A stretch of DNA of 64,000 bases from Mobula hypostoma (Eukaryota), in assembly GCF_963921235.1 (NCBI RefSeq), contig NC_086102.1, forward strand, positions 44,082,001-44,146,000. Direction: 5' to 3'. Positions within the stretch are counted from its first letter, which is position 1; each line of letters begins with the position of its first letter. The notes under the pieces are model-generated. The model was not told the origin of the DNA, did no database searches, and was given only the letters and a program-made list of their open reading frames with translations. The translations under genes and the position numbers were made by a program. This document shows positions 11,125 to 64,000 of this stretch, piece by piece.

Positions 11125-11273
11125 CTACAGAGCAACAGTCCTAACCAGGTTCTGGTATGAGCTACCATGCAGTGCTCCAGAGCATTCCGAATCCTTACTC
11201 GGATTTCCACAACAGGACCAATGTGGATGGCCAGGATGAGTTTTATGTCCATGTCCGCAGCCTTGAAACCCAC
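11125..11273 (-). CDS. TRIM45: TRIM45 coding exon 6 (last, with stop)
   Basis: GGTAG|GT GGG TTT...; GGFQGCGHGHKTHPGHPHWSCCGNPSKDSECSGALHGSSYQNLVRTVAL* (TAG 11127-11125). The six exons total 1695 nt = 564 aa + stop. Confidence 0.95.
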
Positions 11274-13670: not shown

Positions 13671-13879
13671 AATTACTTTTCTATAGATTTGTTAAGTATG
13701 TTTGCAGAAAAAGAATCTCAGGGTTATAAGTGCTGACGTGTGTACTCTGAGGTTTACTTTACAAAGTTGATGAAATTGACAAGCTCAGCATGAATTACTT
13801 TAAACTTGTCCGAAGCACTGAACAAATTCTGCCATAATTTAGATATTAGGGAGGGAAAAACAATATTTGCAGAACAATT

Positions 13880-27245: not shown

Positions 27246-29070
27246 TTTTTTATGTTGAACTTCCAGCTGCTGCATTCACTCCCTGGGTGGTCTGCAGACA
27301 TGAACCTGCCAGATCTGAAATTCACTAGTTCTTTAAAACGACTCCAAACAATGGTACTCACTGCAGTCTCTGAGGCTGCAGATTTCAGCTGTGGTAAAGT
27401 GGGAATACTTGACGACTCCCTTGGGAGCTGCACACAAAAAGTCACTACTCTTTGGAGTCCCGCCGAAGGGTTTCGGCCTGATACATCGACTATACTCTTT
27501 TCATAGATGCTGCCTGGCCTGCTGAGTTCTCCAGCATTTTGTGTGTGGTGCACCATTTTTCAGACCCTTCTTAGCAATATTAAAAAGCTTTTAACTTCTT
27601 CCAAGATTGGCCTTTAGGCAAGCTTTCAGTACGGTAACATAAAGACAGTCAGTGATCAGAGATGTTTGAGAAGTACATACTGGCACTATGGAATAAATCT
27701 GGAAACTTTTTTCTTCACATAGCACTACAACTCTAATGAAGAACCACCAATAAATGATAAGGACAAACTCCTGGAGATATTCAGTTCTGGATTTAGCTGT
27801 GTGGGGGCGGTGGGGGGGGGGTTTAAAATCAGACACAATAAAATAAACATTTTCCAGCAAACGTTTGAACCATGACCTTATCATAACCAACAACCTGCTT
27901 TGTAACAGGGACACTCCTGCTGCAGCCAGTGAAACCTGCTAGATTATGTCGTTGTCTTATTGAGACTACAATTGATTGAAATGTCACATTGATGTCTACA
28001 TTGCCTCCAGCAATACAGATATGATAAGAACATAAAATGTGGAAACAAGAGGCCATTTGGCTCTTTATACTTGTTCTGCCATTCAATGAGATCGTGGTTG
28101 ATCTTTTACCTCAATGTTACTAACCTGCACCAACGCAATATCCCTCGATTTCCTTACTATCCAAATATCACTCTATCTTGATAACTGAGCCTCCACAACC
28201 AGAAAGTTTCACATTTTGGTGAATAAATTTCTTTTCATCCTTGTCTTGAATGTGAAACCTCTTATTTTGAGACTGTGACCCCCACCCCCACCCCCCCCAG
28301 CTCTAAACACTCCAATCAGGGAACATCAACAATATCTCCTCTGCCAAATCACCTTCAGAACCTGGTCAGACCACATTTGGAGCACTGTAAGCAGTTTTGG
28401 GGCCCCATATCTAGGAAAGGATGTGCTGGCATTGGAAAGGATTGAGAAGATGTTTACAAGAATTATCCTAGGAATGAAAGAGATAACATATGAAAAGCAT
28501 TTGATGGTTCTGGACCTGTACTCACTGGAGTTTAGAAGAATGGGCAGGTGGGGGGAAACTCACTGAAATCTAACAAATATTGAAAGGCCTGGATAGAGTG
28601 GATGTGGAGAGGATGTTTCCAAAGAGGGAGTCTAGGATCACAGGCACAGCCTCAGAATAGAAAGAAGTCCCTTTAGAACGGAGATGAGGAGGAATTTAGC
28701 TAGATGGAGGTGAATCAGAGGAATTTATTGTCACAGGCGGCTGTGTCAAGTCATTGGGCGTATTTAAAATGGAGGTTGGTAAGTTCGTGATTAGTAATGG
28801 CACCAAAGATTACGGGGAGAAGGCAGGAGAATGTGGTTGAGAGGGAAGATAGATCAGCCATGATTAAATGTGGAGCATTCTCAATGGGCCAGATGGCCTA
28901 ATTTTGCTTCTATGTCTTAAATGCTTCCTCTAAACTCAACATTATATAAGTGTAGTCTGTATAATCTCTTCTGATATGATCAATCCATTATCATTATCAT
29001 CAAAAAAAAAACAGCTGACAGATTTTAAAGTGATACAAGTGCTGTTAAATACTCTGTCCTTGTCTCTTAC

Positions 29071-29807
29071 CTTCACCCTGAAGGATGCACTTGGTGGGAT
29101 CAATGGTTTTTGTGGTAATGATCCCAAACACCTCAAATCCATCACACTGGCCAGCTCTCTCTTGTGAATGGAACTGAATCCAGTCATCCTCTCCGGGCGG
29201 AGTGCTGTAACTAATCTCATTCAGTTGCTTCAACCTGTTGACTACTACACACTCGGTTAACAAGATTTCCCCAGGAGAGCCATTCGTCAACAAGCTCTCT
29301 GTAAAGTCTACCCCAGTCTTGACATCTGCCAGGATTTGTTCCAACTGGATCTGATGTAGATTGAGCGAGTTCTCCTTCTGCATTTTCAGTTCTTCCAGCT
29401 CTTTCAAAAGCCTGTTCCGATGTTTCTCCAGTGCCTTGATGTAGTCCTCTGTAAAACTATTAATTTCTTCTGTTATATTGCTCAACTGCTCTTTTAGAAT
29501 CAGTCTAGAGTTGTGAATTTTTTGTATGTTCTCCTGTAGAACACCAATACGTGGCTGTGTTTTTTTCAGAAGCTGCTTGATTGACTTGCCGTGTTCGTTA
29601 ATGACATTGGTGATAAAGTCACAGTTGTGGTCTTGATGACCCACAATACAACAGTCTCTGCAGACCAGACAATCGCACGTCTCACAAAACAACCTCAGTT
29701 CCTCTGAAGGATGAGCAGAGCACATGATGGATTGTACAATTCTCCCAGTTCCACCTTGCAGGTCCTTCAGTGCCACCAAGTTATGACTAGCAGTCGCTCT
29801 CTGCCTC
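29071..29807 (-). CDS. TRIM45: TRIM45 coding exon 2 (B-box 2, coiled coil)
   Basis: Acceptor TTTCCGCAG|G; RRQRATASHNLVALKDL...CSAHPSEELRLFCETCDCLVCRDC...DPTKCILQGE; donor GAAG|GTAAG (phase 1); 737 nt. Confidence 0.97.
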
Positions 29808-30775
29808 CTGCGGAAAGAATTAGTTTTAAAACACTTCCGGACCAACTAACTACATTTTTAATAAGATTGATATCATCTTAAAATTACAATACTTCATCAG
29901 ATGGAAATAATTGAAAACTTTCAAATAACGATGAGCCAGAGTACAGGAAGGAGATAAGGAGCCTAGTTACATAGAGTCATAACAATCTTCCCCTCAATGA
30001 CAACAAAAGACCTGGGCACTGATTTCGCTAATAATCTGTACTGGTCTAAACACGTAGACAGCAGGGCCAAGTGCCTCTATTTCCTTCTGAGGCTAAATAA
30101 TCTGACATAACCACTTTGACCCTCACTAATTTGTAGAGATGCACTTTAGAAAGCATCCTATCAGGATGCGCCACAGTTTAACATGACAGCTGCTCTCCTT
30201 TAGACTGCAAGAAACTGCAGACACAACTCAGCAAATCACAGAAACCAACTTCCGGCCCAGGGATTTATCTGCACTTCTCACTGCCTCCGTAAAGCAGTCA
30301 AAGGCCCCAACCCACACTGCACATCCTCTCTTCTCCCCCTCCCAACAGTCAGAAGATACAAAGCAGCGCCACCAGGCTCAGGGACGGCTTCCATCCCGCT
30401 GCTAATGGTCCCCAAGTTATGATAAGATGGATTCATATCCTCCTTACCTCATAACCCACTTCGTTATAACCTTATTGTCCCATCTGCTGTTCACTGTAAC
30501 ATTACATTCTGCATTCTTGTTTCCTCTGACCACCTCAATGCATGTCATGCAAAATAGGTTTTTCACAGTTCCTCAGTAACAAACCAATTTACCAAACAGG
30601 TTGCTTCCTATCATTTAACTGGATGGTACCCAAACATTAAACTTTATAATGAAGAGACATCCATTCCAATACCTTTCCTCTAAGTTTACAAACTATTCTG
30701 TCTATACAAAAAACTATTGGAAGATGAATGCTAGGTGAGTGAACAAAATGCAAACACCAATTCAAATAGGCTTAC

Positions 30776-31215
30776 CTGTGAGCTTTAGAGCAAAAATCGC
30801 AGAGGACTGCTGAGCAAACTTGACACCTTCTTTCAGCTTCTCCGTCATTACAAAGGTCACAGACTAACTTGTGGTCGAGTCTCTTCAAACGCTCTAGTAA
30901 AACCTCGTTTTGGATCAGGTGGTTAGTGGTCAGCCCTTGCATTCCTGCCGTGGGCACATACACCTCGAAATCGCAGGCTGGGCACAGGATGCAAACCCTC
31001 GATCCTGACCTGACCTCTCTCCCTGTCTGCGGAACACAGAACTGCTCCAGGCCACTTAAGCAGTCCAAGCAGAAGGTGTGCAGGCAAGGCAGGAGCTTGG
31101 GATTCGAGTAAAAGCTTCTACAAACCAAACATTTTGTCCTGCAACTCCTTGGAGATTCTGAACTCAAGGGTGGTGCAACAGCCTTGCTCTCCAATTCTTT
31201 CTGTCTCACTGACAT
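30776..31215 (-). CDS. TRIM45: TRIM45 coding exon 1 (RING finger, B-box 1)
   Basis: ATG at 31215; MSVRQK...CLVCRSFYSNPKLLPCLHTFCLDC...CPAC...VCDLCNDGEAERRCQVCSAVLCDFCSKAH matches the vertebrate TRIM45 N-terminus as I recall it; phase-2 donor CACAG|GTAAG; acceptor TTTTTGTAG at 31237 implies an upstream non-coding exon. Confidence 0.96.
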
Positions 31216-39900: not shown

Positions 39901-39924
39901 CCAGTTTATAAAAAATATCATATG

Positions 39925-43920: not shown

Positions 43921-43928
43921 TGATACGA

Positions 43929-45066: not shown

Positions 45067-48057
45067 ATATCCACTCCCATCTCTTTTTTTACTCTTTACA
45101 TATCTGAAAATCTTTAACATCCTCTTTTATATGATTGGCTAGCTTACCTTCATATTTCATCTTTTCTCTCCTTATGGCTTTTTCGTTGCCTTCTGTTGGT
45201 TTTTAAAAGCTTCACAATCCACTAACAATCCCACTAAATTTTGCTCTATTATATGCCCTCTCTTTTTGTTTTTATGCTGTCTTTGACTTTGCTTGTCAGC
45301 CATGCTCGGCTCATCCTCTCTTCACAACACTATTTCATCTTTGGAATGTATCTGTCCTGTGCTTTCCACATTGCTCCCAGAAACTCTATTCATTGTTGTT
45401 CTGCTGTCATCCCTGCTGGTGTCCCCTTCCAATCAACTGTGGCCTGCTCCTTTCTCATGCCTCTGTAATTCCCTTTACTCCACTGTCATACTGACACATT
45501 TGATTTTATCGTCTCCTTCTGCAGATTGAATTCTCTCATTTATGATCACTGCTTCCTAAGAGTTTCTTTATCTTAAGCTCCCTCATCAAATCTGGTTTAT
45601 TACACAACAGCTAATTGTGAATTGCCTTTTCACCTATGGGCTCAACCACAAGTTGCTCTAAAAAGCAATCTCATAGGCATTCTACAAATTCCCTTTCTTG
45701 GGATCTGGCACCAACATGTAGCCACAGAATCACTTTTCCTTTCCCCTACTATTGAGTCTCCTATCACTACTGCTCTGCCCAACTTTACCCTTCCCCGCTA
45801 GCCTCAGAGCTGGCCTCACTGTTGCCGCTGTACCCTGGTAGGTCACTCCTAGTCCCAGCGGTATCCAAGGGGTTTACTTGTCATTGGGGGGAGGTGGGAA
45901 TGGCCACAGGGGAAACCCTGCACTGACTAATTTCTCCCTTTACTTCTGGTGGTCTCCCATCTACTATCTGAAGCCTGTACACCTGTGTACATCCAGCTCT
46001 AGTTCCATTTCCTTGACCTTGTCAGTCAGCAGCTGAAGTTGAATGCACTTCCTGCAGATGTAGTGACCAGCAAGAGTGTCAGGTACCCTGAAAGCCCACA
46101 TCTCTCAGCAGCAGCATTCCACTGCTTAAACTACTATCCTGCCTACACTTGTTATACCTCTGACTGTTCATACTTAAGCTCTAGCCTCTGTCTGTTCTCA
46201 CCTAAGCCTGTTGAGCCAAAGTCTAACACTGTTCGGTCACACAATGGTCACTCAGCTTACACCCCACTTCTCTTTATTGGCCCCTGCCGAGTGCCTAAAG
46301 GATTGCGAAGATAGCATCTCTCCAAATAGTTCCAAATGTTCCCAAGCTCCTTTTAAATCTTACATAGCCGAACCAACCAACGATTCTCACAATGATTGCA
46401 GCCTGTCGAAAATACCAAAAGATCTCAAGCTCCTCGCCAACAGCCTCTCGCTTGGCCTCTGGAATTCCAAGAATCAAGTTTATTTATGATGTCGACATTG
46501 AAATATACAGTGAAATGCATCATTTCCGTTAACAACCAACACACCCGAGAGCGTGCTGGAAGCAGTCCACACTTGTTGCCACATATTCCGGTATAAAATA
46601 GCATGCCCACAATGTTGTCAGTTTGATTGCCTGCTCCACTCTCTAAAAATTCACAAGTTTCTGTTTGCTACTAATCTTTGTTCTAAAACAGCATCACAGT
46701 TAACTGCCTCAGACCTGCATATTTGAAATGGCTAAGTTAATTTGTCCACCACAGCTGACGTTTGTATTCAACCACGTTTATTTTGTGTTAGGGCTTGCCT
46801 GCTCCAGCCTGTCACCCTTTATGGCATAGCTTGTTTTGTTTTCCACTTATTGGTAAAAAAAAATTATCCTGGAAACAATTTTACCAAAATTCAGATGTTT
46901 AAATCAAGGAATTTTTAAAGGCAATATATGAATGTTTTATATATTTTGGCTCAGTTACCCTTTCTCATAAACCAACTTGTATTTCCCGTTTAGTTTAGTC
47001 ATGCTGAATTTGCTGAATTACAAGCTCATATTTCACTGGTCACTTATCCTTCAGTCTGATTAATTAACAAGATAACGGGAGGTCCAGGTGGGGAGCTCTT
47101 TGCCTTTTGGCTGACAGAAAGAGATCCGTCCAACCGTTTTGGATGTGGCAAATTCATTAATGTGACGTGGCGAAATTCATAGTAAGCTAAACGTCAAGCC
47201 TTATCCGTAACATTGAACATAAAATTGAACTGAGCTGCATGTGTTGATTGTAGAAAAAGGTTACATATATGTGAGAGGCAATTTGGGTCAGGAAACGATC
47301 TCGAATCACCTGGCTCTGAGTCTCTGGTGGACGAACATACTTGATGACCCAGATATTTAATTATTTTTTCATTGTGTTACTTTCCTTGCACTTGTCTGCT
47401 TTCTCTGTGACTGTGACACTGTTCTGCATTCTGTTTTCCTTTTAACTATCTCAGCGTAATTATGCAGGGAAGAATCCGGCTGGCTGGCACACAGTACAAA
47501 AACTTTTCGATGTATTTCAGTACGCATGGCAATAATATACCCAAAGCAACAAGTTGTTTTGCTGGCGAAGGGTCTCGGCCTGAAACGTCGACTGCACCTC
47601 TTCCTAGAGATGCTGCCTGGCCTGCTGTGTTCACCAGCAACTTTGATGTGTGTTGCATGAATTTCCAGCATCTGCAGAATTCCTCGTGTTTAAGTTGTAT
47701 TGCTGGTGGCATTCGCTGTCTGTTAGGTGCTAAGGCAGTGGAATTTTGTGCACTTTCGCTGTTGTTTCGTGGTCCACTTCCCAGGACAGGGGAAATAAAA
47801 GCATTCCGATCCAAATATGATGTAGGCAAGGTAATTACGAAGCCACTTTCTAAGTAAAACAAAGGAAGCTTACTGCTGATATTGATTTTATGTATGTTTT
47901 GAAACACTACATTAAGCGAACCGTTCTTTATTGCCAATGGAATAAAAGGAAGTTCTGGTTCCTTCTCATGGACAGTTCACGCCTTCACCGCTGCTGTCTT
48001 CTACTCCAGTTTTCCTTCCATAATTTGCAGTCTTGTTGCTGATGGCGGTCATCGCAG

Positions 48058-48337
48058 GGCTCGCTGTCAGTCTAAAAATTGTCAAGTCCCCTACGGTTTT
48101 GACCCTTCTTCGAGGGCAAACAGCTCGAATCATTTGCCCCTGCGAATTGAGGAGGAGCCGGAGGATCGGGCGGGAATGGTCTCGGTCGCCAGGCGGTTCC
48201 GGGATTGGCAGCTGGAAATTCTTGAAGACAGGCATTCAGCAGCCTGAGGGCTCGCTGGTCATTCAGGATTTTTCACAGAGGGTGGTGGGCACATGGCTTC
48301 GCCACGTCTAGGTTGGGTTTTCCTTTTGTGACCCGAG
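48058..48337 (+). pseudogene. Degenerate paralogous V exon (VJ-C1 family pseudogene)
   Basis: GLAVSLKIVKSPTVLTLLRGQTARIIC...W...GSWKFLKTG...PEGSLVIQ aligns with the 60.3-kb V exon; second Cys and J motif lost, stop at 48309-48311; upstream intron and downstream 49.2-49.62 kb are also paralogous. Confidence 0.85.
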
Positions 48338-48519
48338 GTAATTAGATAAACCAACACCCAAACAAACCCCTGTACGGGGAAGATTTAAAAAAGTGCTGCT
48401 GATACAACAGCTCCACGACTTCGGTGGGCGGCAGGGTCGATCATGCAGATTTCCAAAAGTTCACTGAAAGAGAGGCGGTTAAAATGCAACACTCCGACCG
48501 CTTTTGCAACGCCAACAAG

Positions 48520-49173
48520 ATCTCTGAGGATCTAAGCTGGCCCAACATATTGATGTAGTTATAAACAAGGCAAGTCAGCGGCTATACTTCATTAGGAGTT
48601 TGAAGAGATTTGGCATGTTAACAAATACACTCAAAAATTTCTATAGTTGTATCATGGAGAGCATTCTGACAGGCTGCATCACTGTCTGGTATGGAGGGGC
48701 TACTGCAAAGGACCGAAAGAAGCTGCAGAGGGTTGTAGATCTAGTCAGCTCCATCTTGGGTACTAGCCTACAAAGTACCCAGGACATCTTCAAGGAGCGG
48801 TGTCTCAGAAAGGCAGCGCACATTATCAAGGACCTCCAGCACCCAGGGCATGCCCTTTTCTCACTGTTACCATCAGGTAGGAGGTACAGAAGCCTGAAGG
48901 CACACACTCAGCGATTCAGGAACAGCTTCTTCCCCTCTGCCATTCGATTTCTAAATGGTCATTGAATCTTTGGATGCTACCTCACTTCTTTTAATATACA
49001 GTATTTCTGTTTTTGCACATGTTTTTTTAAAATCTATTCAATATACATATACTGTAATTGATTTACTTGTTTATATATATATATATTTAGATTATGTATT
49101 GCATTGAACTGCTGCTGCTAAGTTAACAAATTTCACGTCACATGCCGGTGATAATAAACCTGATTCTGATTCT
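48520..49173 (+). mobile_element. Rex1-like LINE 3' fragment inside the V pseudogene's downstream intron
   Basis: ESILTGCITVWYG, HPGHALFSLLPSGRRYRS; AATAAA + (GATTCT)n tail. Confidence 0.85.
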
Positions 49174-50794
49174 GAAATCTGTTAAATACCAGCGGGATTG
49201 GTAATGGGGAATCGAAACCGTGAAACGTCCTTGTTGGGACACACTGCCAGTGTAATTTGCATCTTGTGACGAAAGTGTGCGTGGTCGAAAGGAGATGAAA
49301 AATAGAACTAGGAAGTGCTGGAAATTCTCAGCAGGTCAGGTCGCAAATGCGGAGAGAGAAGCAGTTAAAGTTTCATATTGAAAACCCTTCGTCAGAACAC
49401 TGACCTGAAACTTTAAGTCTGTTTCTCTGCTGTTTCAGATTTTAATTCCAGATCTCCGGTAACTGCCTTTGTTTATTCTCACTCGCTGTAAAACTTCGAA
49501 TTCATTACTTTCCCGGGCTGTATTTTATTTCTCTTCCTGCCGGCATACATCTTGAGACACAAACTAATCAATTCAGTTTACATCGTTTCCTTTGTATCCG
49601 TGCACCGTCTTCAGTTGTGTCCACACGTGGAAGTGGAGAGCATATTTCTTAAGTGTCGGGGTATCCAGACTAGAGGGCACAGCCTCAAAATTGAGGAACA
49701 ACCCTTTAGAACAGTGGTAAGGAGGAATTCTTTTAACCAGAGGGTAGTAAATCTATGGAATGCTCTGCCACAGACTGCGGTGGAGGTCAAGTCCATGCGT
49801 ATACTTAAAGCAGAGGGGGAGGGGGAAAGTCGACTCAGACCATGAGAGGCCTGTGTCGGGCATTTTCATGCCTTACAAGGCGCAGACTGGAAGTTGATCA
49901 TTTCCTGATCGGCCAGGGCATCAAAGGATGTGACAAGAAGGCAGGTGTATGGGGTTGAGTGGGATCTGGGATCAGCCATGATGGAATGGTGGAGCAGACT
50001 CAATGGGCTGAATGGCCTAATTCTGATCCTATGTCTTATGGTCTTATGGATCTAATTACTGAAATGGCAGCTGAGGAGCACTTTGGGTCCTGTGGAACTT
50101 TAATGTCCATTTCTCCTCTGTGTTTACTAAGAAGAATATCATGGATTCCAGGGAAATGAATTTAAAAAGTAATGAATCTTGGATCATTTGCTTATTATGA
50201 GGGAGGAGGTATTTGTAGTCTTCAAGTGCATTAAGGTGGGCCTGAATAAGGGCATCCCCAGACCTTATGGGAGCCCCAGTGAAGATATCACAAAACCCCT
50301 GTTTGCTTTGTTGTTAGCTATTGTCAAAGTTCCAGAAGACTGGGGGGTAGAGGGTTCAAGAATGGTAACGAAGATTGGCCAGGGGACTACACACTGGTGA
50401 ACTTGATTAAACTGTACAGAAGTTATTGGAGTGTCTTCTGTAGGTCAAGTTCCACAATCACTTATGTAGATAGTCATGACCTGACCAGGAATGGTCAGCA
50501 TGGATTTGTGCATGGGAGGAAATAACTGAGGAAGCTTTGGAGTTTTTCCCAAAGAGGTAACTAAGGGAATAGATGAAGGTAGGATAATGAATGTTGTCTA
50601 TACATTTACATGACAAGGTCCTGCATGGCAGGATTATGTCGGAGGTTAGGTTGCATAATATTCATGGAGAGGTAGTGAGGTGGATTCAGAATTGGTTTGA
50701 TGATAGGAAGCAGATGGTGTTAGTTGAAGGACCTTTGTTATTCATTATTTATTTAAATGATATAAATGTACATGCATGATCAATAAGTTTGCTG

Positions 50795-52320: not shown

Positions 52321-52735
52321 AAGTTTGCTGATATATTAACTTGGGGGTCTTGTTGACAGTGAAGTTCATTACAATGAATAGCAAAGAGATCTTGATTAGT
52401 TAGGGAGATAGGCTGAGGAATGGCAAATAGATTTCAACTTAGTGTGAGGTGATGCATTTTGAACAGTCAAAGCAGAGTAGGATTTATACAGTGAATGGCA
52501 GGGCACAGATGAGTGTTGTGGAACAGAGGGAACTGAAAGTACAAGAATACAGTTTGCAGGAAGTGGCTGCACAACTGTAGCAAAGAGGGTGTTTAGCATG
52601 CTGGACTATGTCATTCAAGGCAGTCAATTTGGGAGTGGATACACTATATTGCATTTACACAAGACATTGGTGAAGCCGCACTTGGAGAATTGTGTATAGT
52701 TTGCATCACTCTGTTATATGAAATATATTATCAAG

Positions 52736-53567
52736 TGTTACGTACCCCGTAACTGGGTTGCCAAACCAGCAGAAATGGATCACTCAGTTGGAGTCTGGAG
52801 TACTAGAACTAAGGAAGTTTTATTAAAGGAACAAGCAACACAGTAATCGAAAGGATAATAAATGCAACAGTTCAGCGATGATAAACACACATGTGCACAG
52901 AATTAAGATAACAGCATCAATCAAGCTCTATCGTTGTCTAGGGGTAAATGACCAAATTTCAAAGTGACTCAAAGTTCAGTCCAGTTTAGTAGTTCAGTTT
53001 GCAGTAATCGTTGCCATGGTGATGGACAACGTGGGGGAAGAGAGAGAGGGAACAGGAACAACTGATCATTCAGACACGGCTTCACTCACAGACCGGCGAG
53101 ATGGCTCACAAGCAGCTTTTGGGCGGGTCCTTGGTGATGTCACCTGAGGTCACCGACTGTGACCCCTCCTCCAGATGCGGTCGATCCTCTGCAGTGAACC
53201 CGGCACCCAAGCGAGGGCGGACACACACCGGGTTCCCGCTGATCGTACCTTTCCACCCTGGCCGTTGTCTGGTACTTTCCACCGACTCGTGAGAAGCGTA
53301 CCGCTTCCAGGGTCTCGTTACCTCGGGTGGCATGTGTGTCATGCCTTAGCGAACCGGTCCCTTTTTATCCCCCTGCTGGGGTATCGCCTGTCCATCACTT
53401 CAAACAGTTCAAGGTTCAAAGGGGGGAGCCGCTCCAGACAGCTCTCTCTCCCCCGTCCCGTTCCTTATCTCTCCTTCCCCTGAGGGCAGGTGGCAGGCCA
53501 CTTGCTGATGTCACTAATGCTAACCCAGGCCAGCAAACATCTTAATTTTATGTGTATTCTCGTCACA
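52736..53567 (-). mobile_element. Solo LTR (Gypsy-type, related to 20707-21511 and 63511-64000)
   Basis: TGTTACG...CGTCACA termini, 4-bp TSD CAAG. Confidence 0.9.
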
Positions 53568-53689
53568 CAAGCTGGAGAGGGTGTAGAGGCATCCTGAACA
53601 GAACACTTTTGTTGTTGTTCCACTTGGCTCCAGCATTGCAGAAATGAAATCATTCTGAGGCAGATGTGATAAAGTTAAAGTTTTTACAA

Positions 53690-53916
53690 AACAAGTTTCT
53701 AAGTAAAACAAAACATAACAACTATGTGTGATCAATATTTATGTCAAATTGCTGGTATTAATTTTATATACATTTTGAAATACTACATTAAGTGAATTGC
53801 TCTTTATTTTCAATGGAATAAACCTTTATGCAGATTAAAACAGATATTCTGTCTCCTCCTGTGTAATTCACACATTCACCCTGTTGACTTCCATTCCAGT
53901 TTTCTTTCCATAATTT
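53690..53916 (+). pseudogene. Remnant (upstream region, leader donor, part of intron 1) of a third paralog
   Basis: Colinear with 47850-48030 (e.g. TTTTGAAAyACTACATTAAGyGAA, CCAGTTTTCyTTCCATAATTT); GTAATTCA donor at 53863 like the intact leader; cut off before V by a repeat. Confidence 0.7.
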
Positions 53917-54454
53917 CAAAGTTCAAAGTAAATCTATTATCTAATTATATATGTGTCACCTTATAGTACCCTGAGGTTCAATTTCCTGCAGGCATTCACA
54001 GTAAATACAAAGAAATAGAATCAATGGAAAACTGCACACAATAAAAATGGACAAACAATCAATGTGGAAAGGATGACAACTCAATCAAATAAAACAAAAT
54101 AATAATAAATAAACAAGTAATAACACTGAGGGAATTTAAAGTTGATGACCTGCTTCACCTCTGATTCCCTGATGAGCACTGGCTCATATACATCCATTTT
54201 CCTACTCCTATAATGAATAATCAGCTCTTTGGTTTTGCTGACATTGAGTGAGGGGTTGCTGTTGTTGTGGTACCACTCAACCAGATTTCCAATCTCCCTC
54301 CTATATGCTGATTCATCACCACCTTTGATTCGGCCAACAACTGCGGTGTCTTCAGCAAGCTTAAATATGGCATTGGAGCTGTACTTAGCCTCACAATGAT
54401 TAATTTTGAGGGGATGATAGTATTGATGCCAAACTGTAGTCAATGAAGGGCATC

Positions 54455-56765
54455 CTGATTTCACTGTCTAGATGTCCCTGCACCTCCCGGTTCTACCTCC
54501 TACCCAAGATCCACCAACCTGACTGTCCAGGTAGACCCATTGTTTCTGCCTGCTCCTGCCCCACAGAACTCCTGTCTACATACTTTGACTGTTTTATCCC
54601 CCTTGTTTCAGTCCCTTCCTACCTACACCCGTGACACTTCACATGCTCTCGATCTTTTCAGTGACTTTTAAGTTTCCTGGTCCCAATCTTCTCATTTTCA
54701 TGATGGAGATTTAATCCCTATACACTTCTATCCATCAGGAGGGCCTTAAAGCTCTTTCTGGACACCAGACCCAACCAGTTCCCCTCCAACACCACTCCAG
54801 ACATCCCACCCTGCAAAAACTCATTTCAGGGAGGTAGCACCACCAATTTGCGGGAGACTCCTGGAACTTCCAGGAGAGGTGGGATGTCTGCAATGGAGTA
54901 GCTCCTTAGCAGATAGCCAGCTAGTTTAAATAATGTTAGCTATGCTAATGAATGAATGACACCTGTTAAACTCACCTCAGCATGTCTTTTACAGTCTTAA
55001 CCCACCATGGGCAATAGAAAAGTCACTGTTGCAAACAGTGCAGCGAGCAACACTGTCGTTACTTTTGACCCCTATTAGGCAGGGCGCTGCTCTCTCTCAA
55101 GCGCGTGCTTGCTCTCTCTCTCTCTCTCTCTCTCGTGGTCGCTCTCGCACTTTCTCTCGTGGTCGCTCTTGTGTGCTCTCTCACTCGCAAAAAAATTGAT
55201 TTCCGGGACATTGTATATAATTTGCAGGCATCAGGGAGCCACTATTAATATGCGAGAGACTCCCAGAACTTCTGGGAGAGTTGGGATGTCTGCCACTCTC
55301 GGCTGTCTGGTGGAACTGGCCCTCACCCTCAACCATTTCTCCTTTGGCTCCTCCCACTTCTTTCAAACTCAAGGTGTAGCCATGGGCACTTGCATGGATC
55401 CCAGCTATGCCTGCCTTTTTGACGGCTATGTGGAACAGTCTATGTTCCAAGCCTACACCAGCAGTGCTCCCGACTCTTCCTAAGCTACGATGACAACCGC
55501 ATTGGTGCAGCTTCCTGCACCCAAGCTGAGCTTGTCAATTTCCTTAACTTTGCCTCTAACTTCCACCCTCTTGCTGCTGTCTGGACTATACCTCTTTCCA
55601 ACCTGCCATTCCCCTTTCTCAGTTCTTCCTTCTCTGCATCAGAGTGAGGCTTTTCATTCCAGAACTAATGAGAAGTCCTCTTCCTCCAAGAAAAAGGCTT
55701 TCCTTCCTCCACCATCAACACTGCCCTCACAGGCATCTCTTCCATTTTGCACACATTTGCCCTCAACCCATCCTCCCTTCACCACACCAGGGATAGTGTT
55801 CCTCTTGTCCTCACCTACCACCCCACCAGCCTCCGCGTCAGCACATAATCCTCCGAAACTTCTGCAATCACCAACAGGATCCCACCACCAAGCCCATCTT
55901 TACCTCCCCTCTACTTTCTACAGGATCACTCTCTATGTGACTCTCTTGTCCACTCGTCCCTACTCACTGATCTCCCTCCTGGCACTTATCCTTGCAAGCA
56001 GAACAAGTGCTACACCTGCCCTTACAACTCCTCCCACGCTATCATTCAGGGCCCAAACAGTCCTTCCAAGTGAGGCGACCCTTCACCGGCGAGTCTGTTG
56101 GGGTCATTTGCTGTATCTGGTGCTCCTGGTGTGGCCTCCTGTATATCAGTGAGACCTGACATAGATTGGGAGGCCGCTTCGTTGAGCATCTTTACTCTGT
56201 TTGCCACAAAAAGCAAGATTTCCTGGTGGCCACCCATTTCAATTCTACTTCCCATTTCCATTCTGACATGTCAGTCCATGGCCTCCTCCACTGCCGGCAC
56301 GAGGCCACATGCAGGTTGGAGGAGAAACACCTTGTATTCAGTCTGGGTAGCCTCCAAACCAATGGCATGAATATTGATTTCTCAAACCTCCTGTAATTGC
56401 CCCTCCCCTTCACCATTCCCCATTCCTGACTTCCTCTCACACCTTCTCTTATTGCTTTCCCATCACCTCCCCCTTCCCCATCTTCCATGGCCTTCTGTCC
56501 TCTCCAATCAGATTCTCCCTTCTCCAGCCCTTTATCTCTTTCCCCAGTCAATTTCCCAGCTCTTTACTTCACCCCCTCACCCTCTTCCAGTTTCACCTAT
56601 CACCTACCACCCAATACTTCTTCCTCCCTTCCACCACCACCTTCTTATAATGACTTCTCCCCTTTCCTTTCCAGTCCCGATGAAGGGTCTCGGCCCAAAA
56701 CATCGACTGTTTACTTTCTTCCATATATGCTGCCTGGCCTGCTGAGTTCCTCCAGTGTTTTGTTC
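54455..56765 (+). mobile_element. Decayed Penelope-like element (RT, GIY-YIG, pLTR)
   Basis: [40 protein letters not shown]...EEKHLVF; degenerate hammerhead near 56676-56710. Confidence 0.85.
54798..55292. mobile_element. MITE with CAGACATCCCA TIRs and 6-bp TSD, nested in Penelope
   Basis: Left CAGACATCCCA at 54798, right TGGGATGTCTG ending 55292; CCACTC on both flanks. Confidence 0.8.
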
Positions 56766-57479
56766 CAGTTTCTGTGGAAGGGAATAAACAATCAATGTTT
56801 TAGGATACACTATGAGCCTTGCAGTACTGAGTACTCTGGTGGTCCACCCACCTTACCTTGTCTTAGGCTTTATGCTGCACTCTTGACTATGGGTGGGATG
56901 TAGTTTAGCTGGAAAAGATGCGGAGATTCACAGCACGTTATTGGGATTGGTGGGCCTGGATAATAAGGAAAGACTGGATAGACTGCGGCATTTTTCCCCT
57001 TGTAGAGCAGCGGGCTGTGGGTTGACCTCGTAGAAGTATTTAAAATTACAAGGGAAAGGTGAAAGATCCGTCAGTCGTTTCTTTCCACAGTAGGGGAGTC
57101 TAAAACTAGAGGGCATAGATTTAAGGTGAGTGGGGGAAGATTTACAGGAGAATGCAGGAGGTGGCTTTGGCTCGTTTCAACATGAGCAGATTTTTCACAC
57201 AGGATGTGGTGGATATACGGTACTAGATGAAGTAGTAAAGGTGAGTATAATTACAATTTTTTTAGAAGACAATTCTACGAATATATAGTGAGGAAAGGTT
57301 TAGCATGAAGCAGGCCAAATACAGGCAAATGGGACTAGCTCAGGTAGGCAGCTGGTCGGCATGGACGAGCTAGGCCCAACAGCCTGTTTTTATGCTGTAA
57401 GACTGACTCCGGGGTGGTGTCGGGAGGAAGGGCGTGAAAATGAATGGAGCTGAAGATGATGGGGTCACTTTCAGAGAAA

Positions 57480-58005
57480 AGGCAGGTGCTGGGTCACTGT
57501 GTGAGACCAGCTGCACAGAGGTGTGACCTTGAGCAGAACTTGAAAGTAATTTGACTGTTGCTTGCATGACTGAGGTTCACTGACACCCCGTCCACCTGTC
57601 TATTCAGGAGCCTGTGTACCATGCTTACAAGAAATGTGAGAGGTTGCGGCCCCGCTTTGAGTTTCTCAAGGGGCTGCTGCTGAGTTCTGGTGGGCTTGAT
57701 CCTGGGCCTGGCCAAGATGGCCATTCACGGGTCTAGGCGGCGGAAAGTGGAGGGCGCTGCCCGAGTCGACTGCCTGCCCCTTGTCCAAAGGATAAGTTCG
57801 TGCCTGGTTGTCCTTGGAGAAGGAACACTCGGTCGCAATGGGTACAGTGGGGGGACTTCCGGGAGCAGTGACCCCCTCTGGGGGTATAGACTGTTTCATA
57901 TTTTAATATTTTAATCTGAGTATATGTTCTGTCTTGTAGGCATTGGATGTCCATACCTTGCATATATGTGATATAAATAAACTTGTATAGGTTTGTAAAA
58001 AAAAA
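57480..58005 (+). mobile_element. Tx1-type LINE 3' end
   Basis: LLVGLILGLAKMAIH...DCLPL; AATAAA + poly-A. Family assignment is from motif recall. Confidence 0.7.
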
Positions 58006-58060
58006 CAGCCATGCATTCAGTTAAACTTCCAGTCAGTCTGTTGCCGATGTGACACATTAA

Positions 58061-60079
58061 GGCTACGTCCACACTAGACCGGATAAATCTGTAACCGAAG
58101 CTTTTTCTCTTTGTTTTGACCCTCCTTCCACACTGAAATGGCGTTTTCCTACCCCGAAAATGAAGATTTTCTACAACGCCCTCCAGCGTGTATAAATTTG
58201 AAAATGCCGATTGTGCAGAGCAGTGTGGACGGGGTAAACGGATATTTTAAAAAACACTGTCACGACGTGCCGGAACAGATAGTGGCGGCAGCGCGGCATT
58301 TCATTGCTTTCTTGAACGCAACTCCCTACACGACCTAACAATTTCAGAACAGAGGGCAACGAGACTGAAGCCAGAAGAGTTAGAAATGTACTTACCAAAT
58401 ACTTTGACCCATAGCTTACTGAATAAATAAGTATACTCACTTTGCCCTGTTTTCTGTCCTTGCTTGTATGAAGGCGGTTTACCTATTTATGCAAGTTCTT
58501 CTCCAACAATAGATGTGTAACAGCCTAATGTAACATTGTATGGAAATACAAGATAACACTGATTCAGACTGTCATAGGGAGCGTGTGGGAGCGGACCCAA
58601 ATGCAAGACACAGACACTGACGTACTAGAAACAGGACTAGGACTAGAGTTAAGCAAGCAAGGGAAGTGAGGAAGAAAGGGCACTGGACATTGACACAGGC
58701 CCTGGATGAGAATAGGATGCAGGGCCTGGGCTTGGACATGGACAAGAAACACAGAACCCACACAAGGAAATAGGAGCAAGGAGCCTGGACTAGTGACACA
58801 GAACTCTGGAACCAGAGCCTGGACAAGGACCCAGAACCTCGGTCTTGCTTGGGACTCGGAACCGGAACCCGGGTCTGGGCTAGGACTCAGGACTCAGATC
58901 TTGGCAAGGACAGGATGTTGCTACAGAACAGGACGTGAAACCCCAGCACAGGATGAGGGAACCCCAGCACCAAGCTGGGCAAGGCACGTGGACAGAATGA
59001 GAACACAAAGCCTTGACTTGGTCAAGGGAGGACAGGAGCGCACAACCTCGGTTGAGGGAGGACAGGAACATGGAACACAGAGCCAGGACCCCTCCTTGGA
59101 AACAGGATGTAGGGCTGGGACTCATACACAGAACACAGAGATAGATCTCTACTCAAAGTAGCGGCAGACAGCCGGACCTACCCAGCAGAGGTGAGGGCAC
59201 AAAGAGACAGTTCCCAACACTAGGTAGTAGCAGACAGCCGGACCTACCTAATGAAGGCGTGGACACAGGGACAGTTCAAAACAACTATAGAAGTTCCTTA
59301 TCTTGCTCCAGCAGTTGAACTTGACAGCAGTGCAGGCGAAGGTTGCAGGTGAGGGTTACAGGCGAGGCAGGGCTTCAGCAGAGACAGGGCAAGGCAAGGC
59401 TTCAGACACTGGTTGCAGGGCGAGGTTTCAGGAGGAAGAGGCCAAGAAGGGATTCAGACGTGGTTGGGGGGAGGGTTTGACGGGAACAATCCAGCAACCA
59501 AGCCCTTGTCTCCCGAGGTCTTTATGTTTCTGCCCAAACGAGAATCAGGTGTCTTAATTAGAGCACCTAACAGAAACAATGGAAAACAGGACAACCTGGA
59601 ATATGTATCGACGGACCGGACCGGACCGGACCGGACCGTGAACTGGAATGCGGACTTACGGACCGGACCATGACACAGACATGTTTTATACATTTAACAA
59701 GGTGCTTTATTAATGCAACAGAGTTAGTGAGTTTTTCAATGTTCGTCGTCAGCCGGGTCATACTGTCCGTGAACTCCCTGTCGGTTGCCTCCATATGCTC
59801 CAGTATTTGTTGTTTTTTAGTTTTAAGTCCTCCTGCGCGAGAGCCAACAGCAATTCCTTTTAAGTTTTTCTAGTCTTTAACTGGTCAAACGCGCACCAAG
59901 TATACCGTTTCCTCTTCGCTTGGTTTCTGTGTGTCCTGCACATACCCAGTAGGAGGAGATTCGCCCAAATATCCGTCTAATGTGGACAGAGATTATTGAA
60001 AAACGATTGGTGTGGATGCCTATCGTTTTTACGCGAAACCGGCGTTTTCAAAATTATCCGGTCTAGTGAGGACGTTGCC
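58061..60079. mobile_element. PIF/Harbinger-type non-autonomous element
   Basis: TIR GGCTACGTCCACACTAGACCGGATAAAT versus AATTATCCGGTCTAGTGAGGACGTTGCC; TAA on both flanks (58058-58060, 60080-60082). Confidence 0.87.
58570..59675. mobile_element. Solo LTR nested in the Harbinger element
   Basis: TGTCA...TGACA termini, 5-bp TSD CAGAC; (GGACC)n run near 59612. Confidence 0.87.
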
Positions 60080-60156
60080 TAAGCTAAAACTGCCACAAAC
60101 TCGCAGCGATTTATCAGAGCTGGGTGATTCCTGTCCCGACGCTTCCTTCACCCAAC

Positions 60157-60205
60157 ATGTCACTACTCGGAAACTTACTGTACACGCTCTGGCTGTTTCT
60201 TCCGG
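60157..60205 (+). CDS. Leader exon of VJ-C1 IgSF gene
   Basis: CCCAAC ATG; MSLLGNLLYTLWLFLP + G|GTAATT phase-1 donor; a 93-nt intron joins it in frame to GPAVA, completing a hydrophobic signal peptide. Confidence 0.85.
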
Positions 60206-60298
60206 GTAATTCAAGCGCTCTCTCCGTTTGACATTTATTCTCGTTGCCTTCTCATAATTTTGAATCTTTTTGCTAATTGCGATAATTTTCTGTTCTAG

Positions 60299-60631
60299 GG
60301 CCCGCTGTTGCTCTGAAAGTGAACCAGACACCTTCAGCTCTGACCCTTCTCCGAGGACAGACAGCTCGGATCGGCTGTTCCCTGTTATCCGGGGACGAGC
60401 GGGTGGATTCGGTGAGATATTTTTGGACGCGGACACCAGACAAACCTGTACACGGGTCCAGTAATTTCTTGAAAAATGGCACTCGGATTTCTCTGTCCAG
60501 GTCTGAAGGCTGGCTGGTCATTCGCGAGGTGACTATGGATGACTCTGACACCTACCATTGCTCAGCGCTGAGAATGGGTTCGGGCCCCTGGAAAACATAT
60601 TTTGGAATCGGAACAGAAGTAACCATCCGAG
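60299..60631 (+). CDS. Germline-joined VJ-type Ig domain exon (non-rearranging antigen-receptor-like)
   Basis: Acceptor TTTTCTGTTCTAG|GG; B-strand Cys (RIGC), C-strand Trp (YFW), DSDTYHC, J-like FGIGTEVTI in the same exon; donor CGAG|GTACAG; 333 nt, phase 1-1, no stops. Confidence 0.93.
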
Positions 60632-61233
60632 GTACAGTACGTATGAAATGAAACCAGTAAACACTGGAAATACTCAGCAGACTGGGCAAAGTGTGAAGCG
60701 AGGGAACTGGGGCCAAAGTCTCAGACCAATGGCCGAGCTGGAAAACGAGTCTTTAGGTCCCTTTCCCCAAACGCGCCCTGACCTGCTGAAGGAATCTTGT
60801 CTTCGCGGCGTTTGGTTTGTGTTTTGCTTCTGACCCAAAGTAACCGGATTAGCAACACCGAAACAATCTCCCGCATGGGGAAGAGAGAAGACTTGTCGCT
60901 GAATACATCAGCGCCACATCCCAAAAATTCAGTGGTAGAGAGGCGGGTAAAGGACCGACAAGAAATCGGTTAAACACTAGGGGGATTGGTAATGGCGATC
61001 GGAACCGCGAAACTTCCTTGTTGGGACACACTGCCAGTATATTGTGTATCCTGTGACCAATGTGTGCCTGGTCGAACGGAGCTGAAAAATAAAACTAGAA
61101 AGAGCTGGAAACACTCAGCAGGTCGCAAATGCGGAGAGGGAAACAGAGTTAACGTTTGGTATTGAAGACCTTTCGTCAGAACTCTTCTACTCTCCGACCT
61201 GACCTGCTGAATATTTGTTGGTTCTCTATACCT

Positions 61234-61366
61234 AGGTCTGAAGGCTGGCTGGTTATTCGCGAAGTAACTGCGGATGACTCTGACACTTAGCATTGCTCCG
61301 TTTTGTGAATGGATTCGAACTCCTGGAAAACATAGTTTGGGAGCGGAACAATAGTAAACATCCAAG
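61234..61366 (+). pseudogene. Duplicated 3' half of the VJ exon, decayed
   Basis: RSEGWLVIREVTADDSDT*HCSVL*MDSNSWKT*FGSGTIVNIQ, colinear with 60499-60631; three in-frame stops; donor CAAG|GTAAGT kept. Confidence 0.88.
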
Positions 61367-61998
61367 GTAAGTATGAAATGAAACCAGTAAAGGATGGGAT
61401 TGCTCGGCAGGCGAGGCAAGCGAGGGAACTGGAGCCAACGTCTCAGACCAATGGCCGAGCTGGAAGAAGATTCCTTTCTCCAAACGCGCCCTGACCTGCT
61501 GAAGGAATCCTTTGCTTCTGAACCGTGAAACGTCCAACAAGGAACGCACTAGGCAGCGTAATTGTAACTGTAACTGGCCGGGGTGTGCCTGGAAGAAAGA
61601 AACGGAAAGATAAAACCAGGACATGATGGAAACACTCGGGGCCCGTTGCTGATGAGAAACAAACGTTTGGTTTGAAGAACCTTCGTCAGAACTCTTCGAC
61701 CTGAGACCTTACGTCTGTTTCTCTTCCCAAAGTTGCGACCTTACCTGTTGGATATTTCCAGTGGTTACTGTTTTTAATTTTAGATTTTCACTTGCTGTAA
61801 TATTTCGAATTCGATCCGTTCCCGGGCTGTATTTTGTTTCTCTTCCTGACGGTGCATTTCGAGACTCAAAATAATCAACTCGATTCACATTGTTACCTTT
61901 GTATCGTGCACCGTCTTCAGTTGTGTCCACTCTTGCTGTCTGTATCAGTCTGGGTTACAGTAAAATTCACAATGTGTTAATTCTCCCGTTCTGTGCAG

Positions 61999-62292
61999 CG
62001 AAGCCTGACGTCTCCCTCTCTCTGGATCCCAAGAACGAAGCCGCTGGGATTCAAACCCTGACTTGTGTGGCGGCGGGATTTTTCCCGAAAGATCTGAGTA
62101 TTTCTTGGGCTGTAACGGGAGATGTCTCGTATGAAACAAAGGCGGGTCCGCTGTGGGTAAGCGAGGACCTTACCTACAGCCTGAGCTCCCGGCTGCGGGT
62201 GAACGACTCTCGGCGGGAGTCAGTTCCCGTCGCCACCTGCCTGGTTCGTCACGTTACAGGGAATGTGAGGACAAGTTTCACTTTCAACCGAG
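61999..62292 (+). CDS. C1-set Ig constant domain exon of the same gene
   Basis: Acceptor TTCTGTGCAG|CG; LTCVAAGFFPKDLSISW, TYSLSSRL, TCLVRH are C1-set hallmarks; donor CGAG|GTAGGT; 294 nt, phase 1-1, in frame with the VJ exon. Confidence 0.93.
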
Positions 62293-63510
62293 GTAGGTGG
62301 TTTACACAGGGAGTAAATCTCACAACCTGCTTCACCCAATTACGGGTGAAATTGGAAGTAAATTTTGTAAATTTATACAAACCATGGGGTGAACGCAATT
62401 CGTTAATCTGAAAAGTAAAAGTGTGGGTAACGCCCTCAATATCTACAGTCTTTTATTGCAAAATCATTTATTTCAATATACTGAATTGATTTAAAAAAAC
62501 TGGCGCTGTAATGTTATGGTAAAACAGGCAGAAGATACAGACAGGTTAAATAGAATAATTACAAGAGCGCAGGGTTCCAGTTAGGTAGATTATCGGACGA
62601 AGACGATCATTTTTATTAGAAAATGGAAGGCCAACGATATGAAAAAAATGTTAACGATTAATTAAGAATTGTCCACTCATAAAGCAATGAAAGGAGTTAG
62701 GACGGTTGCAGTAAGTCCGGACTCGGAGTTGCTGGAGCTGATTTGGAGGCAATTCCATGCAGCAGAACCAAGGCAGGGCGAAGTCGAGGAAGGATCCGAG
62801 GCGAGCTTCGATCGATTTAAGAGCCGAACTGAATCGGAAAGGTCGTGCACTCCGTGATTTGTACGATTTAAGCATCGGGCCAGTTTGAATTAGTTTGTGT
62901 GTGGGGGTCGGAAGCGAGGGGCGGGTCACCTCGGCTCAATACTCCGCGGGGTTTGCTGGTATCTGCGTGGCACGGAGGCGGTGGCCTGCAGTTCAGTGGT
63001 CTTCTGGATCGTCTGCAATGATGCCTGGCTTTGTAAACTTCAGTTCTCAGTGGTGTTCCCTTGCCTTTATTTTTTGCATTTTTTTTTCTCTCTCCCTGTA
63101 CACGAGATGTTTGACGGTCTTACTTTGTTTCTAATGGGTTCTGTTGGGGTTCTCTGCCTGTAAGGAGACGATTCTTAAGCTTGTATAAAGTATACATACT
63201 TTGAACTTTGAACAGGTATACCACTTTAGATACAATTGGCGTGGTTGACCGAGAAGAGGAAAGCCACCGTGGAAAACGAGTCAGTGGGTGTAAAAATAGG
63301 ATGATTTGGCAGGCAAAGGCGTGGCTGAGGAACTGGTGCAGGGGACAGGGGTTCAGATTCATGCATCATTGGGATCTCTTCTGTGGAAGGTACAAACTGT
63401 ACCCGAGGGGCTCCGATATCCTTGGGGGCAGGTTTGCTAGATTTGTTCGGGAGGTAGAAAAAGATCTAGTGTTATCACTGTATATATAACAAAGCTCTCG
63501 CTCTAAGTAA

Positions 63511-64000
63511 TGTTACGAGAATACACATAAAATTAAGATGTTTGCTGGCCTGGGCTAGCATCAGTGGCATCAGCAGTTGGTCTGCCACCTGCCCTCAGGG
63601 GAAGGAGAGATAAGGAACAATGGAGCAGCGTCTGGAGATGTGTAATGAAGGGATGTGGGAGGAAGAGCTGTCTGGAGCGGCTCCCCGCTTTGAGCCCTGA
63701 ACTGTTTGAAGTGATGGACAGGCGATACCCCAGCAGGGGGATAAAAAGGGACAGGTTCGCTAAGACAGACACACACGCCACCCGAGGTAACGAGACCCTG
63801 GAAGCGGTGCGCTTCTCACGAGTGGGTGAGAAGTCCCAGACAACGACAAGGGTGGAAAGGTACGATCAGCGGGAACCCGGTGTGTGTCCGCCCTTGCCTG
63901 GGTGCCGGGTTCACTGCAGAGGATCGACCGCATCTGGAGGAGGGGTCACAGTCGGTGACCTCAGGTGACATCACCAAGGACCCGCCCAAAAGCTGTTTGT
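63511..64000 (+). mobile_element. LTR, cut by the window end
   Basis: Starts TGTTACGAGAATACAC; near reverse complement of 53100-53567. Confidence 0.85.

Follow-up and report, generated by a model that had tools for sequence, protein, structure and literature searches.

A leader-VJ-C1 gene without recombination signals

We analysed a stretch of 64,000 nucleotides from Mobula hypostoma (contig NC_086102.1, positions 44,082,001 to 44,146,000 of the forward strand), called the window in what follows and numbered from its first letter. Near its end, at positions 60157 to 62292 of the + strand, lies the 5′ part of an antigen-receptor-like gene made of a leader exon (L), an exon in which variable and joining elements are continuous (VJ) and a constant exon of the C1 type. 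Script splicing of these window exons gave 676 nt, that is 225 codons without a stop, and all exon junctions were in phase 1 with GT donors and AG acceptors. An earlier note, made from the letters alone, had proposed such an intact gene, probably in a cartilaginous fish. The host is indeed one, the peptide is exactly as had been quoted, and Pfam recognizes both a V-set domain (36.3 bits, E = 6.9e-9) and a C1-set domain (44.2 bits, E = 2.4e-11). The VJ and C1 borders also stood; the leader exon ends at 60205 and not, as had been given, at 60206.

The leader exon (60157..60205) starts with ATG, comprises 16 codons plus 1 nt and ends at a phase-1 GT donor at 60206. Its translation is identical to the N-terminus of the RefSeq protein XP_062906795.1, described below. 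The leader intron (60206..60298, 93 nt, GT...AG borders) produces the split leader typical of antigen-receptor-type V genes, a layout that recurs in the Hypanus, Scyliorhinus and M. birostris orthologs. The VJ exon (60299..60631) encodes the end of the leader and a V-set domain with its own FGIGTEVTIR J strand; it is delineated by the Pfam match, by PDB alignments running through the J strand and by a contig from the same species. After an intron of 1367 nt (60632..61998) comes the C1-set exon (61999..62292), in phase 1 at both ends, with PDB matches to Ig CH3, UrIg2 and SIRP-alpha d2/d3. The rest of the window (62293..64000) covers 1.7 kb at the start of an intron of 17.2 kb. The translation keeps the canonical Cys-Trp-Cys framework along with the YxC motif, the FGIGTEVTI J strand and the C1 signature CxVxH.

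The FGxGT J motif sits within the V exon. A scan of positions 59000-63000 for recombination signal sequences (RSSs) returned zero CACAGTG or CACTGTG heptamers, and over the same interval a heptamer-12-nonamer scan returned one weak look-alike, against 0.57 expected from shuffles, which is the chance level. The lack of an RSS, already remarked in the earlier note, was thus borne out. Its term 'germline-joined' has to be abandoned, however, as nothing suggests that the V exon was ever split. An Ig-type octamer is absent upstream of the leader, the nearest ATGCAAAT lying at 49255.

Transcript evidence came from contigs of four public runs (X1 to X4, tissues coded) placed on positions 58101-64000. 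The joint 60631 -> 61999 (GT..AG, 1367 nt skipped) was present in contigs of three of these runs (X2, X3 and X4), showing that the V-C1 intron is removed and supplying the spliced transcripts that had been proposed as a check. The X4 junction contig reaches 74 letters into the V exon and 122 into the C1 exon, the latter stretch without listed mismatches. A same-species X1 contig of 328 letters (60304-60631) stops exactly at the V-exon donor with 0 differences. In the two same-species runs, coverage lay on the exons and was mostly nil over the V-C1 intron. A further X4 contig at 62143-62317, with 9 differences in 175 letters, extends 25 nt beyond the C1 donor into the intron; it could be unspliced read-through or the transcript of a paralog.

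The V-C1 intron also contains, at 61222..61509 on the + strand, a duplicate of the last ~140 nt of the V exon together with the start of the intron (~85% nucleotide identity; tblastn match 61225-61371). This duplicate has three in-frame stops and is skipped by the spliced contigs, and the loci sampled for the inhibitory gene in Hypanus and M. birostris (see below) do not contain it. It is a dead pseudo-exon. Overall, the data confirm a real, spliced, non-rearranging L-VJ-C1 gene.

The complete gene and its transmembrane segment

The gene is already modelled in RefSeq. XP_062906795.1 (M. hypostoma, 270 aa) is 100% identical to the window translation over all 225 spliced residues; its RefSeq name, 'T cell receptor beta chain MC.7.G5-like', is misleading. 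The expectation of an antigen-receptor-type misnomer was therefore correct (orthologs are called 'Ig kappa-like' or 'SIRP beta-like'), whereas the suggestion that the gene might be unannotated was not. At the locus of this protein (GCA_963921235.1, OY992597.1; L003), L003 positions 1-13844 are identical to window positions 50157-64000. The transmembrane (TM) exon maps to L003 29503-29595, about 15.7 kb past the window end, in agreement with the earlier failure to find TM or cytoplasmic exons within the window, and a short last exon lies further beyond, at L003 ~33603-33649. The reading frame is intact across the five exons, over 23.6 kb, with canonical splice sites.

The 45 residues that follow C1 in XP_062906795.1 form a TM helix with an arginine, then a tail of ~15 residues in which neither tyrosine motifs nor any other signalling motif can be recognized. 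The same helix, LIP.I.R..II.VG.SLLLL, with Arg at the same position, was found in the activating forms of Mobula, Hemitrygon and Pristis. It is an established rule that a basic TM residue pairs with an acidic residue of adaptors carrying an immunoreceptor tyrosine-based activation motif (ITAM). By this rule, the TM Arg and the short tail lead us to read the window gene as a probable activating-type receptor. A charged TM segment, or a tail with an immunoreceptor tyrosine-based inhibitory motif (ITIM) or switch motif (ITSM), had been suggested for the downstream exons. The window gene has the former, and the latter belongs to its paralog.

An inhibitory paralog and a family in sharks and rays

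The paralog, XP_062908587.1 (469 aa), is encoded on the reverse strand of the same M. hypostoma chromosome at 43,995,210-44,020,307, ~122 kb from the window gene, with TRIM45 in between. The two ectodomains share 85% identity. The C1 exon of the paralog is tandemly duplicated, giving two C1 domains, its TM segment is uncharged, and its tail carries an ITIM (LxYAxV) and an ITSM (TEYAxL). More generally, the non-activating family members have a different, uncharged TM segment and a tail of ~100 residues with further tyrosines. The LxYAxV (ITIM-type) and (T/S)EYAxL (ITSM-type) motifs are invariant in the inhibitory forms of 10 species, and shark tails contain four xxYAxx tyrosine motifs. In the motif comparison, P0071, P0051 and P0046 carried LxYAxV and TEYAxL, and P0061 (the window gene), P0060 and P0048 carried the TM Arg. 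A search of the loci sampled for the inhibitory gene, those of Hypanus and Scyliorhinus, did not recover the activating TM exon. Therefore, the two forms are separate genes and not splice variants.

The second C1 domain appears to be a feature of rays. Tandem copies of the C1 exon, giving V-C1-C1, were located in the inhibitory genes of Hypanus (L001 11299-12649) and M. birostris (L005 11311-12494). Synonymous divergence (dS) between the copies is 0.04-0.05, which points to a recent duplication. A single C1 is found in the activating gene of the window and in every shark gene. Two predicted isoforms, P0055 and P0056 (Heterodontus and Heptranchias isoform X2), skip the TM exon and join C1 to the cytoplasmic exons; they could represent a soluble form or a modelling artefact.

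Relatives exist as RefSeq models in at least 16 sharks and rays, and the single-exon VJ with TM and ITIM tail is kept from Heptranchias to Mobula at one syntenic site. Their machine-given names vary from 'signal-regulatory protein beta-1-like' and 'tyrosine-protein phosphatase non-receptor type substrate 1-like' to 'immunoglobulin kappa light chain-like', 'Ig heavy chain Mem5-like' and 'T cell receptor beta chain MC.7.G5-like'. A HMMER search with the V domain against 1.8 billion cluster representatives gave only four close clusters (84, 69, 52 and 50% identity), the remaining matches having E values of 4e-14 or weaker. Word-indexed protein searches, with the catshark ortholog or with a profile of 10 family sequences, returned only family members. 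In the searchable literature on PRARP, VJ-C1 genes or SIRP in cartilaginous fish, we came across no account of the family.

The ectodomain tree follows the species tree, with activating and inhibitory forms grouping by lineage. Ectodomain identity between the two forms reaches 99.5% in Pristis, 92% in Hemitrygon and 85% in Mobula. As the ectodomains cluster in this way while the activating TM exon is common to the Mobula, Hemitrygon and Pristis lineages, gene conversion between the partners would be the simplest reading of these sequences.

Genomic neighbourhood

The 5′ exons of TRIM45 occupy 27991..31215 on the - strand of the window: the RING exon lies at 30775-31215, the exon for B-box and coiled coil at 29051-29845, and one more exon at ~27991-28110. 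The B-box/coiled-coil exon has a Pfam B-box match, and its best PDB match is human TRIM45 (61 bits). The B-box open reading frame (ORF) had at one point led us to guess linkage to the major histocompatibility complex (MHC), an idea dropped once the ORF was identified as TRIM45. Synteny was judged against the annotated Pristis flank. At the amino acid level, the window TRIM exons share 83-85% identity with a Pristis gene of TRIM45 architecture (RING, B-box and Filamin), which in that species is the immediate upstream neighbour of the orthologous activating receptor. On the downstream side, in tail-to-tail orientation to the receptor, both Mobula and Pristis have a gene of ~1180-1195 residues, which in Mobula carries GRF zinc-ribbon, SNF2 and Helicase_C domains. 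We take this combination to be specific to TTF2 and the neighbour to be TTF2-like; its last exon is 96% identical between the two species. In both, TRIM45 separates the inhibitory from the activating gene, so that the order TTF2-like, activating gene, TRIM45, inhibitory gene is common to them. The Hypanus inhibitory gene is preceded by a V-set/C2-set gene.

On human chromosome 1 the order is PTGFRN-CD101-TTF2-TRIM45-VTCN1 (PMC11565109). The flanking TTF2 and TRIM45 genes match this order and therefore place the receptor family in the block equivalent to human 1p13.1; judged from these flanking sequences, the locus is neither the MHC nor the IgH/T cell receptor (TCR) complex. Human 1p13.1 is itself part of an MHC-paralogous region.

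Twelve kilobases upstream of the window gene, at 46271..49626 on the + strand, lies a decayed tandem copy of the 5′ part of the receptor. It retains a V-like remnant (48039-48296, 38% amino acid identity) and a copy of the V-C intron (49189-49624), is interrupted by a repeat insertion at ~48.5-49.2 kb and has no C1 exon. In Hypanus, the inhibitory receptor has an upstream neighbour whose last exon is matched by positions 46483-46590 of this copy, and on this ground the decayed copy may derive from the inhibitory-gene side.

In the RNA runs, summed contig depth was very high over the repeats at 59677-60070 and 63420-64000 (thousands at 59.7-60.1 kb and up to ~50,000 at 63.6-64.0 kb). Transposon debris is found at 1500-5739, 38560-44379 and 34890-35666, with ORFs for endonuclease and reverse transcriptase of the LINE (long interspersed element) type (Exo_endo_phos, RVT_1) and a GIY-YIG ORF that is possibly Penelope-like.

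Sequence and structure comparisons

When the family V-C1 profile was compared with the PDB, the highest score (all scores being bits per unit) was obtained with SIRP-alpha d1-d2: 73.2 bits in one collinear stretch (profile positions 3-201) that spans a shared domain boundary, GTEL.V.AKP. UrIg2 (9dmx) followed with 60.1 bits and Ig-lambda reached 50.3 bits, both over framework region 3 (FR3) to J plus C1 only (profile 65-198 for Ig-lambda). With the V-only profile the picture changed. TCR V-alpha (40.7 bits), the variable domain of IgNAR (VNAR, 38.8 bits), light-chain V domains (VL, 38.8 bits) and V-delta led, and CD8-beta scored ~31 bits. The V domain alone is thus nearer TCR V-alpha, VNAR and VL, so that 'SIRP-like' describes an architecture and not a proven ancestry. 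The grouping with SIRP that the earlier note had set against its own proposal is accordingly present in the V-C1 comparison; it is not robust, being lost when V is taken alone. By score ranking, no Ig or TCR isotype stands out.

A confident AlphaFold model, computed with a 22-sequence alignment, showed two beta-sandwich domains (predicted local distance difference test score, pLDDT, 87; predicted template modelling score, pTM, 0.79); an earlier 12-sequence alignment had given a pLDDT of 54. With this model, Foldseek ranked human SIRP-alpha first in Swiss-Prot (~25% identity), then B7-H6, SIRP-beta-1, Ig-kappa and TAPBPL, and ranked Fab light chains first in the PDB. Such structural matches extend over the whole range of V-C1 modules, from Fab light chains to SIRP, B7-H6 and TAPBPL, and do not discriminate between them. 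Neighbours in the Atlas language-model space were clusters of 'Ig kappa-like', PTPNS1 and B7-H6 proteins.

Outside elasmobranchs, the nearest relative is P0038, a caecilian protein of V-C1-TM type that carries four tyrosine motifs (blastp E = 2.6e-24; hhalign against the family E = 8.5e-24 over 195 columns). Its exon plan is the same as that of the family, including a TM exon of 39 aa, and no solved structure comes as close to it as the elasmobranch family does (63 bits at most in the PDB). A word-indexed search with P0038 returned only P0038, and a search extending 10 kb from the caecilian gene yielded no exons of TRIM45 or TTF2.

A candidate activating receptor and the alternative readings

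Building on the observed exon structure, splicing, domain types, lack of RSSs, orthologs, paralog, synteny and TM and tail sequences, we consider, with a probability of about 80%, that the window holds the 5′ part of the functional gene for XP_062906795.1, a type-I membrane receptor with a germline VJ-C1 ectodomain, and that this receptor is the activating half of a paired system whose inhibitory twin lies across TRIM45. By analogy with SIRP-beta/SIRP-alpha and other paired receptors, its V domain would bind a ligand. The TM Arg would recruit an ITAM adaptor of the FcR-gamma, DAP12 or CD3-zeta type and so lead to activation, and the inhibitory partner would recruit SHP-type phosphatases, leading to inhibition. 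Gene conversion would keep the two ectodomains alike.

Several points weigh against this reading. Activating forms were observed only in batoids. The ratio of nonsynonymous to synonymous divergence (dN/dS) between the window gene and the inhibitory paralogs is 0.7-0.8 in V and 0.8-1.9 in C1, from small counts; such high values fit the fast evolution of immune genes but equally fit relaxed constraint. RNA depth over the window gene is low, at 2-8, in runs that bear no label beyond 'RNA?' or, in one case, 'probably DNA', although a spliced contig cannot derive from genomic DNA. The V domain of SIRP is not among the top 60 PDB matches of the V-only profile. Adaptor coupling, phosphatase recruitment, ligand binding and cell type are inferred.

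The alternative that survives best changes only the family assignment and leaves the mechanism as it is: the gene could be the cartilaginous-fish ortholog of PRARP, which we regard as a serious possibility while leaning towards the opposite view. Reportedly, PRARP as described by Fu et al. 2019 is non-rearranging and has a V domain of the VJ type, a C1 domain (outside birds), a TM segment and an ITIM tail, and occurs in birds, reptiles, amphibians and bony fish; we know of no cartilaginous-fish member in that description. The L-VJ-C1-TM-ITIM architecture fits this description, and the caecilian V-C1-TM protein with four ITIM-like motifs, with its identical exon plan, is a further argument for it. 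However, no trace of TRIM45 or TTF2 accompanies the caecilian gene within the 10 kb searched, and PRARP has been called a VJ gene 'in the MHC' (PMC10751288), in contrast with the TTF2-TRIM45 location of the present family.

True orthology to the tetrapod SIRP-alpha/beta genes, implied by the RefSeq names of the relatives, appears improbable to us. It would account for the best collinear V-C1 match (SIRP-alpha, 73 bits) with its shared ...GTEL.V(R/Q)AKP... boundary, for the top Swiss-Prot structural match, and for the paired logic of ITIM tail and charged TM, extending to the four xxYAxx motifs of shark tails. It has to contend with one C1 domain in place of two, the second C1 of rays being a recent tandem copy by its dS of 0.04-0.05, with the rank of SIRP V outside the top 60 of the V-only profile and with an identity to SIRP-alpha of ~25%. 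The family lies at TTF2-TRIM45, a 1p13.1-like location, whereas the human SIRP cluster is at 20p13.

We give a slightly smaller chance to the window copy being a decaying duplicate, transcribed at a low level and free of selection, with the inhibitory paralog alone functional. The dN/dS of ~0.8-1.9 in C1, the longest terminal branch in its clade, the dead copy 12 kb upstream, the dead pseudo-exon within the intron and the low RNA depth would all suit such a fate. Yet the frame is intact over five exons and 23.6 kb with canonical splice sites, the transcripts are correctly spliced, the canonical Ig residues and the TM Arg are kept, and the activating TM segment is conserved in Hemitrygon and Pristis.

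That the gene derives from a rearranging IgL or TCR cluster, as the RefSeq names 'TCR beta chain-like' and 'Ig kappa-like' would suggest, is very unlikely; on that view RAG would have joined it in the germ line, and a different 3′ end would have been gained afterwards. Germline-joined Ig genes are common in cartilaginous fish, the V-only profile scores best with TCR V-alpha, VNAR and VL (39-41 bits, through the J strand), and Fab light chains head the Foldseek PDB matches. Against this, positions 59000-63000 hold no RSS or remnant of one, and from Heptranchias to Mobula the family keeps its single-exon VJ, TM and ITIM tail at one syntenic site, outside the Ig/TCR loci as seen in the sampled flanks. 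Moreover, the scores with antigen-receptor V domains are modest and favour no isotype, and SIRP-alpha outscores Ig-lambda as a match of the V-C1 unit.

Membership of the UrIg/UrIg2 family, our first hypothesis when 9dmx appeared among the C1 matches and suggested by the split leader, the single VJ exon followed by C1-type domains and the second-best V-C1 profile match (60 bits for the first unit, over FR3-J and C1 only), was ruled out for practical purposes by domain number and location, UrIg having three C domains, being secreted and lying in the MHC class III region, and UrIg2 having 9-11 C domains and lying in the IgH/TCR-alpha-delta complex (PMC12227049), as against one or two C domains followed by a TM segment at TTF2-TRIM45 here, and by the published catshark and sawfish UrIg2 accessions, which differ from those of the family.

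In our reading the gene belongs to an inhibitory/activating pair that elasmobranchs conserve at TTF2-TRIM45; its model was already in RefSeq, misnamed. In elasmobranch genomes, one coherent receptor family is concealed behind RefSeq labels like 'TCR beta chain MC.7.G5-like', 'Ig heavy chain Mem5-like' and 'Ig kappa light chain-like'. Non-rearranging VJ-C1 genes are the main material for reconstructing the origin of antibodies and TCRs, and kinship with the precursor has been proposed for each of SIRP, PRARP, UrIg and UrIg2. To these, the present family adds conservation throughout sharks and rays, a membrane-bound signalling pair and a defined syntenic address that can be inspected in every vertebrate genome. 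Paired design and address together make it testable whether the PRARP and SIRP genes of bony vertebrates descend from this locus, and whether paired signalling arose before or after RAG diversification. More speculatively, and at rather long odds, the elasmobranch pair and the caecilian V-C1-TM-ITIM gene might stem from an ancient lineage, spread through the gnathostomes, of VJ-C1 receptors that are membrane-bound, signal and were never rearranged. This lineage would have been kept beside TRIM45, TTF2 and VTCN1 in a 1p13-like MHC-paralogous region, and its V domains would be nearer to those of TCR-alpha/delta, IgNAR and IgL than to any other non-rearranging V domain. Such a lineage would be a living model of the cell-surface receptor before RAG split the V exon, a model that UrIg and UrIg2, secreted or many-domained, do not offer.

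Comparison with known systems

With the rearranging receptors (TCR alpha/delta, IgNAR, IgL), the window gene shares a V domain that aligns end to end, FGxGT included, at 39-41 bits, as well as the V-C1 module, the leader intron and a basic TM residue as in TCR chains. It differs from them in having neither RSS nor separate J segment, in lying outside the Ig and TCR loci, in lacking a stalk cysteine between C1 and TM for chain pairing and in possessing an ITIM-bearing twin; any diversity of the gene would be germline only.

UrIg and UrIg2, which have been discussed as relatives of the pre-RAG receptor, resemble it in being elasmobranch, non-rearranging and built of a split leader and a single VJ exon followed by C1-type exons. 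Neither forms an ITIM/activating pair, and the V domain of the window gene is weakly related to theirs. As to PRARP, the V-C1-TM-ITIM architecture reported for it is that of the inhibitory family members, whereas the window gene is the activating form with a charged TM.

The closest parallel in design is SIRP, as represented by the reference structures 2wng and 4i2x (SIRP-alpha/PTPNS1, inhibitory; SIRP-beta, activating). In SIRP as in the window gene, a single-exon V with a J-like G strand follows a split leader and is succeeded directly by a C1-set domain, and the domain boundary ...GTE..V.AKP... is nearly the same. Both systems pair inhibitory genes with tyrosine-motif tails and activating genes with a basic TM residue and a short tail, the ectodomains being near-identical. 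On the other hand, SIRP has two membrane-proximal C1 domains (d2 and d3), where the window gene and sharks have one. The basic TM residue of the window gene is an Arg near the outer end of the helix and not a Lys as in SIRP-beta, the locus is TTF2-TRIM45 instead of the SIRP cluster, and identity is ~25%. Overall, it is a fair statement that the window gene, robustly placed in none of the solved families, combines the workings of SIRP-type paired receptors with a V domain of the antigen-receptor type.

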